Part shown: positions 25,054 through 55,247 of the stretch, piece after piece
Layout of the letters: every line of letters begins with the position of its first letter
How positions within the stretch are numbered: position 1 is the first letter of the stretch
Assembly: GCA_038496445.1 (NCBI GenBank)
Contig: JALMLS010000070.1
Span: 96,574 to 160,573 of the forward strand
Length of the DNA stretch: 64,000 bases
Reading direction: 5' to 3'
Source of the DNA: Trichosphaerium sp. ATCC 40318
Lineage: Eukaryota; Protista; Tubulinea
Program-made: the position numbers and the translations under genes
The notes under the pieces: model-generated
The model's database searches: none
Seen by the model: only the letters and a program-made list of their open reading frames with translations
Told to the model about the DNA's origin: nothing

Positions 25054-25714
25054 TTACACGATTGTGGCCTTCTCCAGTTCACCATCAAAATACCATCTCT
25101 TGTATTCTCCCTTTGGCTTACCATTTACATAAAAACCCTTTTCCCATAATTGACCATTAACATGCCAAAGCTTATGCTCTTACACCATTCTCATAAGTGG
25201 TTTTTTCATACAAGATACCATTACGATGCCACTGAGTCTTCAGACCCACTTGAGCACCATTTACAAAATAAGACAGCTCCAATAACTGTCCGTTCTCATG
25301 CCACTCAGTGTACTCACCTTCTCTCTTACCATCTCGGTAATTATACTGAGAATACAATTCGCCGCTCTCATACCACTCCTGGTAGACTCCTTCATTTTTA
25401 TTGTGGACAAAATAACAGAGGTTCCTTAAGACACCGTTGTCATGCCATAACTTAAACTCACCGTGTAGTTGACCGCGCATCCAAAACTCTTGACATACAA
25501 TCATTGCTGTGAGTGTATTGTTTTCGTAGAATACCTTCCGTTGTAACCATTTGCCGTTTTTCTCGATGTTGCCGTCAAACCTTGTTGTTAGTGCCGTGTA
25601 CTTTGATAAGACAGGCCATTTCAGGTAAACCTCGAAGTCTCTGTAGATTATTGCTATTTGAATCTCCATTGGGAGTAGTAGTAATGCGTTATTTGCAGGT
25701 ATTAATGAGCTAAT
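25054..25714 (-). pseudogene. F-box-like plus MORN-variant (YwqK-like) repeat gene with a frameshift near 25175
   Basis: The ORF stops at YENGVRA*, but the repeat continues in another frame as HKLWHVNGQLWEKGFYVNG...ATIV*. It is a paralog of 53820-55247. Confidence 0.7.
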
Positions 25715-32968: not shown

Positions 32969-34510
32969 ATGACTTGCTTTATGTCATCGCTACCACGAGA
33001 GATGGTATGCGAAATCCTGATGTTCTTACGCACTTCAAATCTGAAATCTATCTCTTTGACCTGTAAACAGTTTCTACACGTAGTACGAAATGATATTGGC
33101 TTTGCTAACATTGACGCAAAAAATTACAACGTACTGGACCTCTGCAAGAACAAAGGACTTTTAAAGTCAACCCATATTCATGTACCAATGCTATTGAGGC
33201 CAGAAATAGCCATTCTTCTTCACGGAGCGTATAATCTGAGGATGGACATCAGAAAAATCAGCGATGAGGTCATAACACACTTCGGAAACGTCCGCACACT
33301 AGATATTGGTCGCAGTACAATCACGGATGTTGGTTTGTCAGCGCTTACAAATATTACCAAGCTTTCCTTTGTTCCTAATGAAATAATCACTCCAAAAGGT
33401 CTAAAATCACTCTCTAGACTCAAAGAAATATCATTGATTGGGGAGTGTGTTACTGACAGTCATCTGGAAGCTATTTCTAGAGTGCCAACCATTGACTTAT
33501 CTTTTTGCAACAACATCACTAACAAAGGTGTTGGAGCACTTGCTGGTGTTAAAACAATAAGAATCAGTAACTGTGACAAAGTATCTGACGAAGGATACGC
33601 ATCTTTGGCAGGTGTCAAAGAAGCAAAGCTTGCTCCTATTGGATACAACTTTGGATCAAATAATCTGACAGATGTTGGATTGAAAGCACTTGCAGGTGTT
33701 AAAAAGCTTATTATCCACAGGAATCCTTATATCACTGATAAAGGTGTATCAGCGCTTTCTGGTATACACACTATCAACTTGAATCGTTGTAACATTGGTG
33801 ATAAGTGTATGAAGGCGCTATCAGGAGTTCACACAATCGACATTTGTGATACATTTATAACAGATATTGGTCTTAAGTGTCTTAAAGGTGTACATACAAT
33901 TCTATTAGATAACTGTTTCAATGTGACTTCATTGGGTATATCATACCTTGCAGGTGTTCACACAATATCACTAAGTGGCTGTGACTATATCACTGATGAA
34001 GGTGTCTCAGCATTACGTGGAGTATACAAGATAAATCTAAAAAATTGCACATTAATTACCGACTTGTCTTTGAAAGCACTGGGAGGTGTTTCAGAGATAA
34101 AACTTGATCACTGTTTTTTTATAACAGATGAAGGTTTGAAGTATATTTCAGGAGCACGTGATGTCAGTTTGGTTAATTGTAGTGAAATTACAGATAAAGG
34201 ATTAAAATATCTTGTTGGTGTAGAAAAACTTGATATTTCTGGATGTCAAAATATTACGGATGACAGCATTATATCTCTCTATGGAGTCACTAATTTGACT
34301 GCAAATGATTGTCCTCTTATCACTGATTATGGTATCTTGTATTTATTTGGACCTCTTAAGCATTGCAGATGTGATTCTGTTTCAGCAAGAATGTCTTATT
34401 TCTTTGTTTGGTCTTGTGGTACTTTAATAATTAATGGAAAAAAACCTGCATATGAACATCTAGAACAACATTCACCATACCAATCGTACACTATACGTGA
34501 CTTTTTGTGA
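32969..34510 (+). CDS. Intronless F-box plus LRR protein (about 22-aa GVHTIxL repeats)
   Basis: F-box SLPREMVCEILMFL...ISLTCKQF; tandem ITDxGxxxLxGVHTIxL repeats; 513-aa ORF. Confidence 0.9.
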   Translation: MTCFMSSLPREMVCEILMFLRTSNLKSISLTCKQFLHVVRNDIGFANIDAKNYNVLDLCKNKGLLKSTHIHVPMLLRPEIAILLHGAYNLRMDIRKISDEVITHFGNVRTLDIGRSTITDVGLSALTNITKLSFVPNEIITPKGLKSLSRLKEISLIGECVTDSHLEAISRVPTIDLSFCNNITNKGVGALAGVKTIRISNCDKVSDEGYASLAGVKEAKLAPIGYNFGSNNLTDVGLKALAGVKKLIIHRNPYITDKGVSALSGIHTINLNRCNIGDKCMKALSGVHTIDICDTFITDIGLKCLKGVHTILLDNCFNVTSLGISYLAGVHTISLSGCDYITDEGVSALRGVYKINLKNCTLITDLSLKALGGVSEIKLDHCFFITDEGLKYISGARDVSLVNCSEITDKGLKYLVGVEKLDISGCQNITDDSIISLYGVTNLTANDCPLITDYGILYLFGPLKHCRCDSVSARMSYFFVWSCGTLIINGKKPAYEHLEQHSPYQSYTIRDFL

Positions 34511-37223: not shown

Positions 37224-38594
37224 CTAGCTATTTAAATAAAAAACTACGCCACGACTTGACTCACAAATATCTTTGTCCTCATCACGTGGTATCGTCGTCA
37301 AAATGCGGTTCTTGCAGAATACTGTTACTCCTTTGTCCATTATCGCTTTAAGGCACCCAACTGTGAATCTAGTGACCTTAGTGAACTTTAACACCTTTAG
37401 TCTTGTTAACGGAATTAGCCAATCATCTGATACATTAGTTTCGTTTAGATCAAGTGTGTGTACACTTGACAGACTTTTCATACTCTCTTTTGTGATAACT
37501 TCATTACTAGAAAGGCATATACTATGTACACCAGACAACGCCATAACTCCTCTATCTGTAACAGAAGTACCACCCAAATTAATTGTATGGACACCTGCCA
37601 ACGCCGAAATACCTCTATCTGTCACATGTGTATCCGCTAAGTCTATAGTATGTACGCCAGCTAGTGCTACTATGCCTTCATCTGTTATTTCTCTACACTT
37701 TTTCAAGTTTATCACGTGTACTCCGGCCAAAGAAGAAACACCTTTATCTGTGATATGTTGGCAAAATTCTAAGTTAATATCGTACACTCCAGCTAAAGCG
37801 GAAATACCTGAATCTGATACTTTAGTGTCATGTAAGTCTATAGTGTGTACTCCAGCAAGAGCTGAAATACCTTCGTCTGTGATACCATAGCAGTTATTTA
37901 AAATTATGGTATGTACTCCAGCCAACGCCTTAATTCCTTTGTCTGTTACTGAAGTACCAGCTAAGTTGATGGTATGTACTCCAGCCATGACGTACAACGC
38001 TTCATCTGTAACTTTGGAATAGGGGATGCTGACCTTAGGCACGCCAGCAAGCGCTTTAAAACCTTTATCTGTCAATGCGTCATCAGGTCGAGGCCACAAA
38101 GTGGTGTCACTTGTGTCAACTTGATGCAGACTAATGGATTTGAGGTGTTTCGCTAGACGTTTCAAGCTTGAGTCTTTGAACCTTGGACATCTTGAGATGC
38201 TCAAGTGACGAACACCTCTGATGGACTTGAACCCTTTCTTTGTAATGTAATCAGAGTTGGCTAGTTCGAGGGAGCGAACTCCGGTAAGGTAAGCGAGATC
38301 GTCGTCTGTGGTTTTGCGTAACTTCAACGATATTTTTGTGTTTTTGAGAAGAGGACTCCCGCGGAGGCGAGAACACCATGTTGTCGATCTAATATTGATG
38401 GTTCCGTATCCAACAACGTAGCGTATGATGTTTGAGAATAGTTTACAGGTCCGAGATGCGGAAAAGCGACTAGAAACATCAAAAAACTCGAGTAAACAAA
38501 CGAGGAGTTCCGTTGGAATGTCTAAAACATGGATATTTGCTGGTTTATCTTTAAAGTGCTTTCCACTTAATTTAGCCTTCGGGTTTGGTTCCAT
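37224..38594 (-). CDS. Intronless F-box plus LRR protein, paralog of 32969-34510
   Basis: F-box DIPTELLVCLLEFF...SRTCKLF; repeats TDxGISALAGVHTIxL; first ATG at 38594. Confidence 0.9.
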   Translation of the reverse strand: MEPNPKAKLSGKHFKDKPANIHVLDIPTELLVCLLEFFDVSSRFSASRTCKLFSNIIRYVVGYGTINIRSTTWCSRLRGSPLLKNTKISLKLRKTTDDDLAYLTGVRSLELANSDYITKKGFKSIRGVRHLSISRCPRFKDSSLKRLAKHLKSISLHQVDTSDTTLWPRPDDALTDKGFKALAGVPKVSIPYSKVTDEALYVMAGVHTINLAGTSVTDKGIKALAGVHTIILNNCYGITDEGISALAGVHTIDLHDTKVSDSGISALAGVYDINLEFCQHITDKGVSSLAGVHVINLKKCREITDEGIVALAGVHTIDLADTHVTDRGISALAGVHTINLGGTSVTDRGVMALSGVHSICLSSNEVITKESMKSLSSVHTLDLNETNVSDDWLIPLTRLKVLKFTKVTRFTVGCLKAIMDKGVTVFCKNRILTTIPRDEDKDICESSRGVVFYLNS

Positions 38595-38929
38595 AGAAGC
38601 GCCGGCAGGGTAAACGATGATGTACAATTGCTGTAGTTAAGTTTCAATGCTGAGGTCACATTTCATAGTTCTTGTGCAAGCGCACCTGATTTTCGCTTAT
38701 TTCTTCCTAAATAATTTACACGTGCTCATATAATTAAGATCTGAATAGTTCTATTTTTGGTTTCTCCGATTTAACCATTGGAGCAATGGTGATAGGCAAT
38801 TTTTGACTGAAATTGGAAGGACAAGAATGACTTCTGTCTTTTCGCTCTTACAAATACTTAAGGGCAACAATATGGGTTCTGACGTACTGTTTAATAAATC
38901 CCTTATGTAGAGGGACTGAACTTGAAAAA

Positions 38930-40981: not shown

Positions 40982-43900
40982 TCAATTCCAATTAATTGAT
41001 GCAACATTTAGGACCTCCTTATTCTTTGTAAGCTTTACGCTATGCCTTGTAAAAACCCCGTGAGCAGTTCAGATGTCATAGTAGGTAGAAGACTTTTTAC
41101 GAACCTCGTAACATTTTGTTGAGGAGTGCCGAAGTTAGTGTAAACAGACACTGTGGCAATCTATGACATTGGGATAGTTAAAATCTGTAGGAAAAAAAAA
41201 GAACATATCATAAAGGTTTTAGCGTACAGTTCCAAGAGCAGTAACACGACGTGCATGGAATAGTTTAACGGATACTTGGTAATTACCATACTGTGCAGAG
41301 CGTATCAAGTACTCTTCTGGGCCATATCTTGAAAAAAGTTAGCCATAACTTGTAGTACGAGCACTAAGTATATTTTGGATTTTTTAGCTTTCCATACCCT
41401 GCAGCGCAGTCTTTAGATAATAAGCCTCCAGCTAATGTTCTGTTGTTGAAACTGTAGCACTTATCACCGTTAGGTTCAGTCACGTGCAATTCTACATCGG
41501 TTTTGTCGGTATGCTACAGACGTCTTTAGAAAAAAGATGTACTAAACTAGTATACCCATTGTAAGACGACTCTGATATCGACCGGTAAGTTCGTTATTAA
41601 TCTTGGGTCAACAAAATCATAGTTGACTCTTAAATGAGGCGGTGCAAGCATATTGATATCTTTGACACGATGTAAAAGTGCATTTAGATCCCTTAATACA
41701 AATACTAAGAAAAAAACGCAGAAACAGAACAGAAAAAAACTTGTACATTAGAGCAATGACCTCGATTTGTGCAAAGCGGTTGTCCCATTTCTTTTCAACT
41801 ATATCATATAAAACTCTAACAGCCTTATTAAGATCTTTTCTCTTGATTAATACTTCAGCAAGATCTCTACAACTTTGAGGCTCCTCAGGTCGAAGTTCAT
41901 GTACTTTCTCAAGAACATGACAAACAACACTATCAACATCCTTCATAAACTATTAGTTCTTGAAACAAGCAATAGTACTAGTACGTACATTTTGTTCTTG
42001 TAATTTTCTTGCTAGAATGCGTAGAAAATGTGGGTTATCCAGATCAATCTCAGCAAGATTTGATAAGATGCGAATTCCTAGGTTAACGTGACCCATTTCA
42101 AAAAATGAGCATGCTGCGTCAAAGTAGAATTCAGGACCAGATTTTTCTGTTCTTAAACGCAAGTAATCCTGGTGGAAAGTTAGCAATGTGATTGGTAGGA
42201 ATGAAGGATGTACAGAGTAGGCTTGAGTTGCTGATACTTTTCGTTGAGCATTTTTTGATGTCGTGAAAGAGATCACGGGTTGAGGAGCACCGTATGAGGT
42301 ATCATTGTCTTTAAGAGACGCAATAATCTCTTCCATATTATTAAAAGCGCTTGTGGGCATGGAAGAATATAAATCGCCTATTTTAAAGTGGTTTAAGAGA
42401 ATAGTCTGGAAGGAATTTGTTGATTTAATCTTACTTTGAAAACTATCTTGCTCCTCTTCTGATTCAACGAAGTCATCGACAACGTTTATCGTAAAGTCAT
42501 CATACTTGTCTTCAGATGCATATTTCTGACTGATGTCTTCGACAACCTCTGACTCTGGGCTGTCAGACCCTTCCGCATCACTACTTGATGCACTTGAGGA
42601 ATGATCTTCTTAAAGGAAACATGTCAATAAAAAAAACGTTGTGAACAAAATTCTGGCTATACCCTCTTTCTGTTCTTCCATTATTAACTGTTTTACTGGA
42701 ATAGTAGCACGTTGTATGGTAGTAACTTTCTTACCAGTAACAACATCAGTTCCTTGTATGAATCTCTAGTAGAACTATGAGCTGATTTGCACAGTATGCT
42801 AGCATGCCTTTCGGATTCCGTGCTTTCCTGCTTTGGCATATCTGACTGCGCCAACTTTCATAACTTTGCCCTAATACGGTCAACACAAAGAAAGAAAAAG
42901 AAATTCATACATCTACTTCTATTGTGGCGCCCAGTGTTGGCGTTGTAGTATCAAATCTAGGGCTATAGCTTGTGGACGACGATAGGTTACTTTCTGATCT
43001 CTTAGCAGATCTCCTTCTTTTGTGCTTGTCTATAAAAATCAAAATAAGCAACACTCACGTAAGATAACGTACTTTTATTACTAGCTGCGGTCTTACGTTG
43101 CCTGTCATCCCTTGATTCAATAGATTCAGTTTTCTTTGTGTTTCCAGCCTTAATGTTGAAGCTATCATTACTCCTTTTTAACTGTTCTACTTTTTTTCCG
43201 GACGAATCTATGCCTACGAAAATCCATCACGTGATTTGAATAAACACGATTTAATAGCACGAAATGAAAATAGTAGAAACATTACGTACCTACAACAGCA
43301 ACCTTCGCTGGTCCATGCTTACCAGGGCGAGATCTTCGTACTTTTTGAATAGTTATTTCTTTTCCGTTTACGACAATAACATCTCCTGCTTTAACACTCA
43401 TTGCCTTACCTATAATAAGAATAAAAAGTAAATATCATTACTAAAAAGGCATGTTGTACGTTTTTCGACTGTATTGGTATCTGACGTGGTAATTGGTTGG
43501 ACTTCTTGTGGTACGGATTTCTTTTCCGCCTTTTTCTTAAGCGGTCTTCCCTTATTCGTTTACGTGAGAATTCACGTTGTGGTTCCCTCAGATGCTGATA
43601 GAGGTATCATATAGGCTGCCAGACTTCGATCAACAACTTCGGATGAAGTACTAGGCAACGCAGAAATTGACGTTTCAATGTCATTGTATTGTTCTGCTAC
43701 TTTTCTCTGTAGCACTAGTGGTTGATAAACGCGATTCAATTTCCCTCCCTTCTTGACAACTCTCCTACTACTTGGACTTGTATCTCTTTGTTTTTTCAGA
43801 TGTTTCGTTTTAAGGGCATTGAGACCTTGTGCTAGCTCAGCAGCCTTAAAAGTTAGTTGTTTCAAGAATCAGTACTTTCATACCTCTGCAGAACTAAGAG

Positions 43901-46783
43901 CTTCTCCCAATCCACTCATTAAAGAATGTATATCGCCTTTGGTGAGCTCATCATCCCCATCTTTATCAAACATCTGTCGAAATTTGTTATTATTGGGGAA
44001 GAATATTTTTTGTACACTGAAGATTTCTGTTATGTCTGATTGATTAATACCCATGGCTACCAATAATTCAGGATCATATTCATCTTGTTTAATTTCTGCA
44101 GCCATCACTGAAGGTTGTTCTTCAGGCATACGCAAGATTTGAGGAACATTGGTAAAATCATCTTGTTTAACGAAGTGTTAAGGTTTGGCTTGTTGATAGC
44201 TTTACGTACGAACACATGAATGCTTAGTCTCTAGTTCAATATTGTAATCTAAATGGTGCTGAGCCAATGAAACATTTCCACCACTCTCACCCCACCAAGC
44301 TAATGTTTTAGTGAATAAACAAAGAACCTTTGAGTATTTTTACATACCGACTCTTCTATTCCAAAGAGATAAGACGTACTGAATGCGCTCTTCTTTTTCA
44401 TCCTTTTTATCCTTAATTTGGGCGTTCATTATTGCAAAATAAGTTGCTCTCATATCTAACAGTTAAGTAAATTAAAGCACGTGTAAGAAATTTCTTACCG
44501 GGTAACATCTTTGGAGGTGGTATTTCGTACTTGACGTATTGCATAACTGACTCAAGTACCAGCATAGATGTCTTTGGCGTAACGATTCCATACATAGTAC
44601 TTAAACTTATCATTTCTTTCGCAAGGCGCTCGTTATTATTGGCATCTTCTTGGATATCTAAAAATGTAAGCTGGAGACATTAGTAATTTGTTACAAACCT
44701 GAGATTCTCTTTTGAGCCCATAGCCTTCCAAGAAATCTGCCTCGTTTCACTCCCTTGACATCTACTTTAAACTCATGGGCAATGGATTCACTGGTATAGC
44801 CATAGCCTACGAAGGGTTAGTAGTGGTACAAACAAATAAGCTGTACAAAGCTTCAGATTGGTGCTAGCGCTCAGTTTTCCTACAACCATGACAGTCTGGT
44901 CTTGACTGACAGCCTCTTTTCGCTTGGGGTACACATCGGTAACGCAATTATCACCTCTTTCAATACGCAACAAAGAAAATTGGTTCTGGACATTGAGAAT
45001 AGACGCAGCAAGAGAAGAAAAGTTCACAGATGACTAAAGACAAACATTAGTATAAGTGCAAACTACATAATCTTGTGTTTGCCTTCAAATTGGTGTATAC
45101 GCCACCAGAAGCTTTAGATATCTTCCTCAAACCATCATGATTTACTTCTTTATCATGAGAGAATGAGAATACACGTAACTCGGTACTTCCAAGCTCAAGA
45201 GGACCTTTTGTGCTTTAAAATACGCTTATTTGCAAACGCAGTACCTATTGTTGCGAATCCGTTCGTAAACAGAAGACAAGCCTTATAGGCTGTACCACTC
45301 TTGTTCAATGCTCTCGCGTGTAGATTATAGAAAGCGCTGGCTAGATACTAAGTGAGAATCGTTACTAGGTCACGTGACTTACCTCCATCGTATACAATGT
45401 TGTTCAGGAAGTTCTCCATTTCGGAAGTGCTATGAGACACATCAAACGAAGTCATTGCATCTGGTTCATTGCGAAACGGTATTATGTCGACAACCACTTT
45501 GCCAAGTGGCGAACATATTCTTTTCAATGATTCCAAACACTTGCTATTCTGCTGGCTAAGCGAAGCATCCCAAAGAACAAGCAAGTGATTCACAACTGAA
45601 CCAATTCTACAAAAAAGCATCAGTTAACGTTGTAAACGCAGACTATCTTCACGGTACCTTGGCTTACTGGTTTTTTGTTCAGAAACAATGTCCATCAACG
45701 AAAAAAAACAGTACTTGTTTTACTGTCTTTTTCAACCAATAGTAGAGGTTCATCTGTTGTAGCACGTATGATTATACTGCAATTTGCAGATATATCTTTT
45801 TGCTCAAAATGACCTGAATGACCCTTTGTAGCTCGTTAATAAGAGAACAGACATATCTTGTATGTTCACTACAATGTACCTGATGACCTTTCGAGAAGGT
45901 TACTGGCTTGCCATTACAACTAAACTTAGTTGGTTTAATGCCACAGTCACTGGACACCTAAACGAGTCAATTAGTGGTAAAACATGCATAGTGTAAGCAC
46001 TCACATTCGCTAGAACGGAATAAGAAGGAATCCTTTCAACAAATTGAAGAGGGAAGTTGTACTCAAGTTCCTTAGTTGCTTTTTCTTGTCTTTGTTTTTC
46101 TTGGACCTTCAAAGGCGAAGAGAATACAAGTCTAACAGCTCGAGAACCCCTTTTTTGTTGTCAGGTTTTAAGCTTTCTTGGTTTTATCTTACTTTTTAGG
46201 AACTGGGTAGATACGTGTTTTGTACACGTTTCCTCGCACGTGTTCAACCATACCACAAGTATTATTGTTAGTCCTTTCTGAGGTTTCAAAAGCAGCTCTA
46301 GTTTGATCTTTAGGGACTACAACCTATGTAGTAAAGTAAGCATTTCAAGACACTAACTTTTTTATTCGAACAAACAACCACTTACGCCGTCTACCATGAC
46401 ACCGTTTACATCTAAAGCGTAACCGCAAACTGTAGAACCTAGATTAAACTCTCAGTATTCGAGTAGCCATATTGATAATCTCATTCACTTAAGAGGTGAA
46501 GAAACGAGGAAAAAGTTTGGATTCGTTTGGCGAATTTTTTGGTTTGTATCCTCACCTTCGTTTAAGGGAAATTCAATTCTGCCTCTTCCTCAGTGTCTCC
46601 ACGATTAAAAAAAGTCATCTAGATAGGTATTTAGGTTCTTCAGGTGACAAAGTTGGTAAAACGGTTGTAAAAGACCTGAACGGTTGTTTTTGCGAGAAAA
46701 CCCCATATATCTACACGAATAGAGCACTCTTTGATCTCCAGCAGTCTGCCATCCTTCGTTCGTACTGAGCAAAGTTTATCCAT
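40982..46783 (-). CDS. VIT-vWA-like-TPR-DUF2135 (YfaP-like) protein with an inserted EF-hand and two eIF5A-like domains
   Basis: VIT region (IRVDIWGFLAKTTVQ, EAELNFPL, VCGYALDVNGVMVDG, GNVYKTRIYP), LWDASLS, YGIVTPKTSMLVLE, RILSNLAEIDLDN, LRPEEPQSCRDLA and DUF2135 motifs DIRVVLQW..TDVELHVTEPNG..GYGPEEYLIR. Confidence 0.85.
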
Positions 46784-47108
46784 ATTGTAACAGCTGATGT
46801 TGGTTAAACCGTAATCTTTTGTTAAGTTAAATCAACAAGTGTCAAAACGCTGTCAAACAACTGACTTATGTACCCACGTGACCAAAACTATTTACAAATA
46901 CACACGATTCAACCAGATAGCAGCTATCACTATTCAAGCTCTTTGAAGAAGAGCTAATATTTAAAATAGCAGGTACAGAGGTCTTAGAAAACCGGTTAAG
47001 TCTAGGTACAAAGTCTATGCAAAAAAGTACCAACAAACTTTGCTAGCCAAGGTGTCTAAAAAACCTTGTATTTAAAGCCTAGCGTACACACTTGTTCATG
47101 GAAATAGT

Positions 47109-48509
47109 TTATTTTGGAGCTGGTTTACCCATTGCCTTTGCAAGAGCCGCAAACTTATTTGTATTTAATTTCTTGACAGGGCGCTTTTCAGTCTTTCCAT
47201 AATGCTCAGGAAGGTGAGATTCTTTTTCTGTACCTCCGCTACTGCCACAAACAGCGCCAAGATCCTTTAAAATACTCAGCGCTGAAGTATTACCTGAATT
47301 AACAGCCACATCAGCAGGAGTAAGACCTTTATCATTTAGAGCATTAATATTTTTTTTGACCCTCTCGTCTTTTAGTAAAACATCCACAGAAGCAGACGCA
47401 TGCATCTCAATAGCACAATGTAAAGGAGTGTCACCTCCTTGACCCTTCTTTGAAATATTCTCTTCGCCAACACGAGGGTCACTTAGCATTGCTTCTATAC
47501 ATTGTGACTTGTTCCACGAAGCAAGTTTATGAAGTGCCGTCCACTTGTACATATCGCATCCCAAGATATCAATGTCATCTTCTTTGAGCCACCCCAAGAA
47601 CTTCTCTGTACTTAATGGCGCTTCCATAATTTTGCTTAAGATTCTCTTCCTGCCTTTTACACCGGATTTCTTTGGTACCGGCTGAGGTTTACTTTCATCT
47701 TTGGCTACATAAGTTCCGGCAATAAAAGATGTAATTATTTCGCTTATTTCCGTTTCTCCGTGTTCCTTAGCAGCCTCTGATGGTGTTCTATTCCATTTAT
47801 CTTTTATCTTGTAGTCGGCACCACCTTTGAGAAGAGACAACATGACCTATTGAGCAGTTTAGAATGCGTAACGTTCCAGGGTTTTTTAAAGGGTTTAGGT
47901 CACAAACCTCTTTGTTAGCACCGTTTGCAGCCTAGAGTTATGTTAGACGTTGCTACCTTTTTTTGTGCGTCCGTACCAGAAAAAGCGGAGTTTCACCCCA
48001 TTCGTTGCATGCATCTATCTTCACGCGTGAATCCTTTAGTAGACGCTCAGCTGACAACGCAGAACCTTGTTTTGACAACATGTCATTTAAACGAGCAAAA
48101 AGAATTGGGTTGATTACTTACCGTACATCGCAGCTTGATGTAATGGCGTATTTTGCCTTTTGTTAGGCACATTAGGATCAACACGTTTGTCATTCAGCAA
48201 AGCGTCTACAACTCTTGGCTCGTTATAAGCAGCTGCCCAATGAAGCGCTGTCATTGACTCTTCATCTTTTGCGTTGACATTTGTGTTAACGTCTTTTAGG
48301 AGTTCATTTATTGTATTAAGCTCTCCTTTGAGCGCAGCGAATATAAATGCGCTGTTTGGATCATTTGGTACATTTTGCGCTATCATAACGTTATAACTCC
48401 TTAATAACACCGAGGGGAAACAATAATCATATCGCTATGTACCTAACTTTGCAGTTGCGTCTTTGAGCCTATCAAGCTTTGCCTGTAGGGTAGTTTGAGT
48501 ACTAGCCAT
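47109..48509 (-). CDS. Ankyrin-repeat protein
   Basis: TALHWAA, NTPLHQAA, WTALHKLA, DTPLHCAI, GLTPADVA. Confidence 0.88.
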
Positions 48510-53586: not shown

Positions 53587-53819
53587 GTGCGTACTTACAC
53601 CAAAAATGAGCAACAGAGAACTATTGAGCACAAAAAAGACGATTTTACAGACGGTCTTAAGTATGATTTATGGTTCCTTGACGCTGAATCCATATCAATC
53701 ATAGCTACTATCTTCCATTTGAGTACCATAACTATGTTATGTAAATTTACAATTTGGTGAATATCCAAAAGTTGTTTTGTTTTAAGACACGTGAGCTTAT
53801 AACCAAAAATAACAGCGAA

Positions 53820-55247
53820 ATGAACAACGAAAATCATACAGGTTTTTCTTTAACCCTATGCGACCTACCAAGCGACATTCTACGCGAAATTTCGCAATAC
53901 AACGCTGAATCTTTCAAAAAGCTTCATACCCTCTCAAAAAAGGCTGCTTTACGCACTCACTTTGATGAACGTCTGAACCGTACAGGATTATGGCTATCTT
54001 GGTTTCCAAACGGCCAAATCGCAAAAAGCGAACGTGAAAATGGACTATGTAAACACTGGCACGTGAACGGACAGTTATCTTTTACCGGATGGAAAAAATG
54101 CGGTCAGTACGACGGAAAAGTTTCAGAGTGGTACGATACTGGTGTATTGAAAAAAGAGTGTACAAAGGATTTTGGCCTGAAAGACGGCGAGAAAAAGCGC
54201 TGGTATAGGAGTGGTAAATTACAGTACAGCATCAACATGAAAGGTGGAAGGAGACATGGCGAGTGTAAGGAGTGGTATGAGAATGGTCAGATCTCTTCAG
54301 AGTGTACCATGAACAATGGAGAAAAGGAAGGTGCTTGTAAAGAGTACTATGAGAATGGTTTTCCAAAGGCAACGTATTTTATGACGGAAGGTAAAGAGGA
54401 AGGTGAGTCAAAACAGTTTTATGGAAACGGATTGATAAAAACATTAAAACAAATGAAGAAAGGAAGAATAAAAGGAGAACATAAAACTTGGTATAAAAAC
54501 GGAAACCCAAAAGTTCACAGGATTGTTAATAATGGTAGAGAGGATGGAGAGTATATATCTTGGCATGATAATAACCAAATAAGACTTCAATGTACTATGA
54601 AGGATGGTAAAGCTCAAGGAAAATGGAGAGAATGGCATAAGAATGGAACACTTTTTATTGAATGTAATATGGTTGATGATGAAGAAGATGGTTTGTTTAT
54701 GAAATATGATGATCGTGGTGTGTCAACTGTTTCTTATTACAAGAAAAAAGGCGTAAAAGAAGGTCTGTACAAAGAATGGCATAAAAATGGTCAGCTAGCT
54801 TTGACGAAAGAGATGAAAAATGGACTCGAACATGGAGAGTGTTTCAGATTTTTTCCAAACGGAGCTAAAAAGTCAATTACAGTCATGAAAGAAGGTAAAG
54901 CCCATGGCGCTTATAAGGAGTGGCATGATAACGGTATGGATTGTATTCAATGTACAATGGTCGATGGGAAGGAAGAAGGTGAACACAAAACGTGGTTTTC
55001 TGATGGTCAGTTAGCCGTTCTGAAGAAAATGAAAGGCGGTAAGAAAGAAGGAGAGTACCTTGAATGGTACAGTAACGGCCAAATGAAGATGATGTGTACT
55101 ATGAAGAATGATAAGGAAGACGGAATACATAGAGAGTGGACACTTTCTGGCGAGCCTAAAGAGACTTACATGATGAAAAATGGAGTAAAGCAGAGTGGGA
55201 AAAAGTGGTATTCTCGTAACTCGCTAAAGCTGTATCTGAGTAAGTAA
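53820..55247 (+). CDS. Intronless F-box-like plus MORN-variant (YwqK-like) repeat protein
   Basis: N-terminal LCDLPSDILREI, then many 24-aa repeats G(E)YKEW(H/Y)xNGQ.....MKxGKxE. Confidence 0.9.
   Translation: MNNENHTGFSLTLCDLPSDILREISQYNAESFKKLHTLSKKAALRTHFDERLNRTGLWLSWFPNGQIAKSERENGLCKHWHVNGQLSFTGWKKCGQYDGKVSEWYDTGVLKKECTKDFGLKDGEKKRWYRSGKLQYSINMKGGRRHGECKEWYENGQISSECTMNNGEKEGACKEYYENGFPKATYFMTEGKEEGESKQFYGNGLIKTLKQMKKGRIKGEHKTWYKNGNPKVHRIVNNGREDGEYISWHDNNQIRLQCTMKDGKAQGKWREWHKNGTLFIECNMVDDEEDGLFMKYDDRGVSTVSYYKKKGVKEGLYKEWHKNGQLALTKEMKNGLEHGECFRFFPNGAKKSITVMKEGKAHGAYKEWHDNGMDCIQCTMVDGKEEGEHKTWFSDGQLAVLKKMKGGKKEGEYLEWYSNGQMKMMCTMKNDKEDGIHREWTLSGEPKETYMMKNGVKQSGKKWYSRNSLKLYLSK

Follow-up and report, generated by a model that had tools for sequence, protein, structure and literature searches.

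A gene on the minus strand of a 64,000-nucleotide (nt) stretch of DNA from the amoeba Trichosphaerium sp. ATCC 40318 (contig JALMLS010000070.1, positions 96,574 to 160,573; henceforth the window, in whose own coordinates all positions are given) encodes two homologues of domain I of eIF5A, each of which retains the hypusine acceptor loop and lacks the OB domain. The gene is real and expressed; it spans approximately 40982 to 46783 (about 5.8 kb, with a putative ATG at 46783 and a putative end near 40982), and its predicted product, of roughly 1300-1400 amino acids (aa) and without a recognisable signal peptide, is a protein of the VIT-vWA-TPR-DUF2135 type (YfaP_C being the newer Pfam name of DUF2135). 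Sequence profiles place the two eIF5A-like heads, D1 and D2, in a variable slot between its vWA and TPR parts, a known domain in a new, conserved context. We propose, with a probability of roughly one in two, that the loop of these heads has been kept for recognition, that the heads would bind deoxyhypusine synthase (DHS) and probably become deoxyhypusinated or hypusinated, and that the scaffold would display them as bait or docking loops.

The initial annotation of the window, made from the sequence alone, had described two tandem eIF5A N-domains with intact GKHG motifs, and this description is borne out. Its peptide readings of both domains are correct residue for residue, and the loop lysines are encoded by AAG in either case (43320-43318 in D1, 42825-42823 in D2). 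Spliced D1 matches the Pfam profile IF5A-like_N (PF21485) with 35.5 bits (E 9e-9; cutoff 27.1), its first exon alone reaching 28.3 bits, and spliced D2 scores 26.2 bits (E 7e-6), just below the cutoff. In a sequence search of the PDB all matches of D2 are e/aIF5A chains (best E 1.5e-3), as are all those of D1 (best E 1.9e-5) except the weakest, a de novo TIM barrel (E 0.46). We also made an AlphaFold2 model of the first head of a counterpart from Arcella intermedia (described below), with the window exons included in the alignment. It has a predicted local distance difference test (pLDDT) score of 91.7, and its top 35 Foldseek matches in the PDB are e/aIF5A N-domains, with template modeling (TM) scores of 0.70-0.82 and root mean square deviations of 1.2-2.8 Å; domain I of EF-P comes next, and HEX-1 lies far behind (TM 0.50-0.51). 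At the level of profiles the likeness does not extend to bacterial EF-P, the EFP_N scores of 14.9 and 14.8 bits being under the cutoff of 23.

The absence of a C-terminal OB domain, likewise noted in the initial annotation, was also upheld: PF01287 matches neither the exons that follow D1 and D2 nor any part of the Arcella protein, and a low-complexity linker comes after each head. The heads are therefore not translation factors. Nor are they a stand-alone protein of about 130-170 aa, as their exons lie inside the 5.8-kb chassis gene and the Arcella open reading frame (ORF) has 1191 aa. With the e/aIF5A proteins (PF21485 plus PF01287) they share the homologous N-terminal beta-barrel, the G-K-H-G hairpin with the lysine that follows it, and the basic character of the domain (net charge +10 in D1 and +6 in D2); they differ in being two tandem copies on disordered linkers in a protein of about 1300-1400 aa, without OB domain, with degenerate loop flanks in the window and with no implied role in translation.

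The expression of the gene is documented by cDNA contigs from two public runs of one study (X1 and X3, labelled “RNA?”), which we aligned to 41500-47000. Four introns inside the eIF5A region (43289-43214, 43072-43030, 42910-42871, and 42807-42766) are each removed in these contigs, the observed joints being 43212/43289, 43029/43073, 42869/42910, and 42765/42808, and seven further introns of the gene are removed as well, eleven in total. Such spliced joints show that the contigs derive from RNA. D1 is thus assembled from an exon at 43290-43409, which codes for strands beta1-beta3 and the hairpin loop SRPGKHGPAK (acceptor at 43409 or 43404, 3' splice site confirmed by cDNA), and one at 43073-43213 (both splice sites confirmed in X1 and X3), which adds the remaining barrel (GIDSSGKKVEQLKRSNDSFNI) and then a basic low-complexity linker. 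The next exon (42911-43029) continues the linker and supplies the first strand of D2 (...TPTLGATIEVD), and the one at 42808-42870 its hairpin with the loop AKAGKHGIRK; both splice sites of these two exons are cDNA-confirmed. D2 ends in an exon at 42663-42765 (RFIQGTDVVTGKKVTTIQRATIPV...), whose 5' splice site is confirmed by cDNA and whose 3' donor at 42662 is predicted. One 460-nt contig runs from the first exon of D1 to the last of D2, and D1 and D2 are therefore on one spliced transcript. The intron inside D2, 42807-42766, is of the GC-AG type, its removal being confirmed by cDNA. A further intron, of 45 nt and in frame (42213-42169), lies inside a 218-aa open frame at 41956-42609, where it reads through as coding, yet it is spliced out in the cDNA.

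With differences from the window at about 2% of positions, the contigs come from another strain or allele. The differences are fewer in the D1-D2 part (2 of 460 nt) than elsewhere in the gene (18 of 862 nt; p = 0.018). At position 43129 the contigs of both runs have C where the window has G, which on the coding strand is a change from Thr to Ser in the linker after D1.

The scaffold belongs to a family that we collected with phmmer, using the exon at 41956-42608 as query against 1.84 billion representative proteins. This search returned 151 weak relatives, mostly of about 1000 aa, and a Pfam scan of 40 of them found VIT in 38 and DUF2135 in 38. A family hidden Markov model (HMM) built from 39 relatives, with the Arcella protein left out, matches the window in eleven minus-strand fragments that run in order from profile position 85 to 997, with E values down to 1e-24; no plus-strand fragment and no other fragment of the window reached E 0.01. 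At the N-terminal end, the VIT exons (46192-46451) correspond to positions 85-145 (E 7e-12), and they are 59.5% identical to residues 9-48 of the Arcella protein. The vWA exons (45050-45623) cover positions 267-412 (E 7e-13) and include the metal-ion-dependent adhesion site (MIDAS) motif DxSxS as WDASLS, in the exon 45623-45351; its W, D, S, and S fall on near-invariant columns of the family alignment. Positions 507-588 follow at 44679-44343. Downstream of the heads, the exon that begins with an acidic Ser-rich linker and goes on into the start of the TPR-like region (41956-42608) corresponds to positions 664-834 (fragment 42609-41956, E 1e-24), and the end of the TPR region with the C-terminal beta-sandwich of the DUF2135/YfaP_C type (41222-41949, motif GYGPEEYLIR) to positions 831-997 (E 6e-20, 2e-8, 6e-16, and 2e-8). 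The eIF5A exons fall, together with an EF-hand, in the gap between positions 588 and 664; by this colinearity the D1 and D2 exons occupy the variable insert slot between the vWA and TPR parts. On the Pfam profiles themselves the gene is faint: the VIT exon scores 16.6 bits (cutoff 26.5), the Arcella protein being weak here too, and the spliced DUF2135 region of the window gene has no match to the Pfam DUF2135 profile. Both eukaryotic members are divergent.

The EF-hand part of the slot lies upstream of the heads, in two exons (44161-44016 and 43973-43884) whose product, once spliced, contains one EF-hand, the loop being DKDGDDELTKGD; its match to Pfam EF-hand_7 (27.2 bits, E 5e-6) stays below the cutoff of 30. 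The introns around these exons (44209-44162, 44015-43974, and 43883-43845) are absent from the cDNA contigs, that is, spliced. The linker exon that follows (43576-43844, with a putative 3' end) is in phase with the cDNA-confirmed intron 43883-43845. From there to D1 the stretch 43575-43410 presumably holds one or more short exons: 565 in-frame solutions with one or two introns reach D1, too many to settle on one model. For the full gene, a minimum-intron dynamic programme gave a wrong model, without the first exon of D1, and was dropped.

The initial annotation had assigned the eIF5A exons to a VIT-DUF2135 gene. This assignment agrees with the profile colinearity and with the single ORF of the Arcella protein; the RNA contigs, for their part, do not join D1 and D2 to the flanking exons, none covering 43340-43707 or 42420-42603. 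The joins to the VIT, vWA, and EF-hand exons on one side and to the TPR exons on the other rest on in-phase splice solutions, on the colinearity with the family profile, and on the full-length transcript of Arcella. It is conceivable, then, that the D1 and D2 exons form a separate small transcript, starting from an ATG at 43401 and nested between two unrelated genes. Besides the two cDNA gaps, this would agree with the ATG that opens D1 and with the linker upstream of D1, which has no significant similarity to the Arcella linker (104 of 500 shuffles reach its score) and was discarded as support for the join. Nevertheless, we consider such an artefact of the gene model very improbable: the family profile splits exactly around the D1 and D2 exons, on the same strand and in order; the same order stands in the one 1191-aa ORF of Arcella; the gaps to be bridged measure no more than about 170 and 55 nt, and GT-AG introns that keep the phase are available for both; and D2 is in phase with the next exon through the GT-AG intron 42662-42609.

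The Arcella counterpart, a transcriptome protein encoded by one ORF (P0152; EP01124_P028676, 1191 aa), is the only one among the 150 listed relatives to carry GKHG heads. It realises the possibility that the same fusion occurs in another protist: two IF5A-like_N stretches, totalling 89.8 bits, lie between its vWA and TPR parts, and their loops, SSSKTGKHGSSK and ASSKTGKHGSTK, keep the GKHG motif. In a tblastn search it aligns colinearly with the window from 46323 to 41225, at 27-60% identity per block, so that both proteins have the same order of VIT, vWA, two eIF5A N-domains, TPR, and a DUF2135-like part. The two differ in that P0152 has no Pfam EF-hand match, has near-canonical loops, and has heads that are 52% identical to each other, as against 29% in the window. 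A model of the full Arcella protein is confident, at pLDDT near 90, for the chassis (residues 1-540 and 880-1191), whose N-terminal half matches the inter-alpha-inhibitor heavy chain 1 (PDB 6FPY; E 1.6e-9), whereas residues 541-875 are disordered except for two small beta-barrels. As modelled, the heads are strung like beads on a long tether, which projects as a loop from the folded scaffold.

Further cases of the fusion were sought widely. A search of 5.8 billion protein clusters with the Arcella queries P0031 and P0152 (region and excised region) returned only the Arcella cluster and P0155, a 326-aa ORF from a contig of 71% GC with one eIF5A-like head. A metagenome scan with the patterns SSKTGKHG and SGKKVESIM-like gave 30 loci, all ordinary eIF5A/aIF5A genes or of the P0155 type, none of which matches the chassis profile. 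In the ESM Atlas neither a shape search with the head model nor a feature search with P0152 returned fusion clusters. The ORF type with one head was seen in metagenomic contigs of 71-72% GC from two samples (L001, 1039-1218; L126, 808-984), where an Ala/Gly-rich N-terminal part precedes an eIF5A-like head with the loop SSSKTGKHGSMK; no OB domain is visible on these short contigs, and high GC may account for the length of the N-terminal ORF. Full-text literature searches retrieved no mention of DUF2135 and no paper on a VIT/vWA-eIF5A fusion; cytoplasmic VIT/vWA proteins are known in Dictyostelium, without these parts (PMC10539598).

Among the four fused copies (D1, D2, and the two Arcella heads), G-K-H-G-x-x-K is invariant, along with a few core residues, at identities of 29-38% between the species, 29% between D1 and D2, and 52% between the two Arcella heads. 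Identity to human eIF5A is 37% for D1, 29% for D2, and 41% and 35% for the Arcella copies. Retention of this motif at 29-52% identity supports selection on the loop, as the initial annotation had supposed. An alternative would be a generic small beta-barrel of the KOW/SH3-like kind that serves as a spacer or binding module and keeps GKHG only for a tight hairpin, with no link to hypusine, DHS, or the ribosome. The high divergence of the window copies (29% between D1 and D2), their drifted loop flanks, and the presence in the slot of other cargos unrelated to translation would fit such a module. On balance, we regard it as quite unlikely, given that not only the glycines but also the Lys, the His, and Lys55 are invariant in four of four copies, that the Arcella copies retain full SKTGKHG, and that the D1-D2 part has fewer strain differences than the rest of the gene.

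The D1 loop, SRPGKHGPAKV, is nearly of the archaeal aIF5A type: almost all genes retrieved with a codon pattern for P-G-K-H-G-x-A-K code for archaeal aIF5A, and an archaeal 11-residue loop like that of D1 occurs in 9 loci. In terms of the whole domain, the best non-self matches of D1 are the Arcella heads (41 and 37 bits), followed by archaeal sequences (at most 33.8) and human eIF5A (27.6). Being closest to the Arcella heads, D1 suggests that the fused heads of the window gene and of Arcella go back to one entry into the scaffold. A comparison over about 60 residues with three eukaryotic fragments does not separate an archaeal from a eukaryotic source.

The known requirements of DHS offer a rationale for what is kept. 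As the initial annotation had stated and a review agrees, eIF5A is the only known hypusine protein, and the minimal substrate is small: DHS accepts aa 30-90 of eIF5A, and for DOHH residues 20-90 are enough (PMC9117371). In its complex with DHS, eIF5A touches the enzyme through the N-domain alone, without help from the C-domain; the active site takes up the loop 46-SKTGKHGHA-54, in which Thr48 meets Asn173 of DHS, and the basic N-domain of eIF5A fits an acidic patch on the enzyme (PMC10042821). The initial annotation had suggested that the protein could be a second substrate or a regulator of DHS, a ribosome-docking module, or a decoy. Because DHS needs only the N-domain, we propose that the heads bind it, with deoxyhypusination or hypusination a probable outcome. 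The G-K-H-G-x-x-K tip would have been kept since something must still recognise it, and the best-documented partner of the loop, which needs the N-domain only, is DHS; modification would be more likely for the near-canonical Arcella copies than for the drifted copies of the window. On this view, eIF5A-like loops, which may bear hypusine, would be held out by the scaffold as bait or as a handle for docking, and the vWA MIDAS site and the TPR part may supply other contacts. A stronger form of this proposal is that the heads are true substrates of the amoeba DHS and hydroxylase, so that the window scaffold and its Arcella counterpart would be the first (deoxy)hypusine proteins other than eIF5A and would put the loop to a use other than translation, on display as bait or for docking. 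The sufficiency of the N-domain for DHS makes substrate status plausible; the full claim is possible, though we would hold it tentatively, with the odds against it.

Several points weigh against recognition by DHS as the reason for the conserved loop. The window loops depart from the full eukaryotic consensus, with Pro (D1) and Ala (D2) at the position of Thr48 and Pro (D1) and Ile (D2) at that of His53, and a T48N change in eIF5A is pathogenic (PMC10042821). D2, as said, stays just below the Pfam cutoff, and the RNA contigs do not tie the heads to the chassis exons. The glycines of the GKHG hairpin could be kept for structure alone. Finally, the slot contents of other relatives are unrelated, and the reason for display may not concern hypusine. 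As regards Thr48, archaeal aIF5A normally has Pro at this position, which makes Pro compatible, at any rate in archaea, with a substrate of DHS; the Arcella loops keep SKTGKHG, and their only departures from the eukaryotic consensus are at His53 and Ala54.

One possibility is that the recogniser is the ribosome, with the heads entering the E site or contacting the end of the peptidyl-tRNA as eIF5A does and thereby tethering the scaffold to the 60S or 80S particle. The retained fold of eIF5A domain I and its basic loop speak for such a docking handle. So does the precedent of Nmd3, although its module, called eIF5A-like, is a look-alike in structure, with the OB part included and the hypusine loop missing, whereas the modules of the window and Arcella proteins are sequence homologues of domain I only, with the loop kept. 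Common to both cases is an eIF5A-like module within a larger protein, which in Nmd3 contacts the ribosomal E site and uL1 (PMC6795138). eIF5A itself, however, binds the ribosome with nearly all of its N-domain and a portion of its C-domain (PMC10042821), and the fused heads have no OB domain; one E site cannot hold two heads, and the window copies have degenerate loop flanks. We hence consider ribosome docking unlikely. Use of an eIF5A domain outside translation is also known from the Woronin body protein HEX-1, which assembles into crystals. HEX-1 is derived from eIF5A and carries an eIF5A domain (PMC5656841); it differs from the proteins described here in standing alone and in keeping both domains.

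The slot itself was surveyed in 84 family members, in two surveys. The Arcella slot holds the two eIF5A N-domains; that of an Amoeba proteus transcriptome protein holds ubiquitin. In relatives whose nearest known clusters are bacterial, it contains CarboxypepD_reg (13 in the first survey), Plug (3), TonB_C (2), GspD_N0, or Trans_reg_C. These relatives share with the window protein a chassis that matches the profile over its full length, the MIDAS DxSxS motif, and the place of the slot; they differ in that the slot is filled with envelope-type domains (CarboxypepD_reg, Plug, TonB_C, GspD_N0) or nothing recognisable, and the bacterial loci examined show no apparent introns, unlike the window gene. 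An ESM Atlas feature search with P0152 likewise found the nearest known clusters to the chassis to be bacterial. Within these surveys, the Amoeba proteus protein (P0001, 755 aa) has its ubiquitin domain at residues 279-349, and one locus (L153, 4194-11567) encodes a tandem pair of bacterial paralogs (1220 and 1188 aa), both with a TonB C-terminal domain in the slot.

The variety of cargo raises the possibility of an integrated bait or decoy, in which the scaffold would show copies of conserved host proteins to effectors of a pathogen or virus, or to host regulators, which would act on the copy in place of the real target, and the chassis would report or absorb the attack. The heads would here mimic the hypusine loop of eIF5A; modification of the heads by the host DHS would in that case be incidental, or else needed for faithful mimicry. 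The change of slot cargo across the family (ubiquitin, IF5A-like_N, envelope-type domains), the disordered tethers on which the heads are predicted to sit, and the existence of tandem paralogs in bacteria are consistent with this picture. If it is right, there would be an analogy with the integrated decoys of plant nucleotide-binding leucine-rich-repeat (NLR) receptors, where a copy of a host target is likewise placed in a sensor scaffold and the cargo differs between paralogs; the chassis are unrelated, and the window protein is without NB-ARC, LRR, or any other known immune signalling domain. Nonetheless, no effector directed at eIF5A is known to us, no signalling or killing domain can be recognised in the chassis, and PADLOC gave no match for the five proteins scanned (P0152, P0001, and three relatives with envelope-type or no recognisable slot domains). 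The bacterial gene neighbourhoods that were examined gave no functional hint. An integrated bait is hence a somewhat doubtful explanation, though one to be taken seriously.

The neighbourhood of the gene in the window is rich in repeat proteins. A gene at 32969-34510 on the plus strand combines an F-box with LRR_6, and an ORF at 37224-38627 on the minus strand looks similar. Of three further ORFs, at 53754-55247 (plus strand), 25172-25669 (minus strand), and 47109-47843 (minus strand), two code for MORN_2 repeats and one apparently for ankyrin repeats.

The strictness of hypusine, confined to one lysine in one protein, has been ascribed to the recognition of the folded eIF5A N-domain by DHS and DOHH (PMC9117371, PMC10042821). 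An N-domain with an intact acceptor loop that is present twice in an unrelated expressed protein, and is conserved in two amoebae, makes the rule of a single hypusine protein directly testable. The gene also points to an undescribed scaffold family, of a type otherwise known chiefly from bacteria, which would show core eukaryotic domains (eIF5A and ubiquitin) in one variable slot. This pattern resembles the integrated baits of immune receptors; if the resemblance is true, one would expect the eIF5A loop to be a target of enzymes or effectors.

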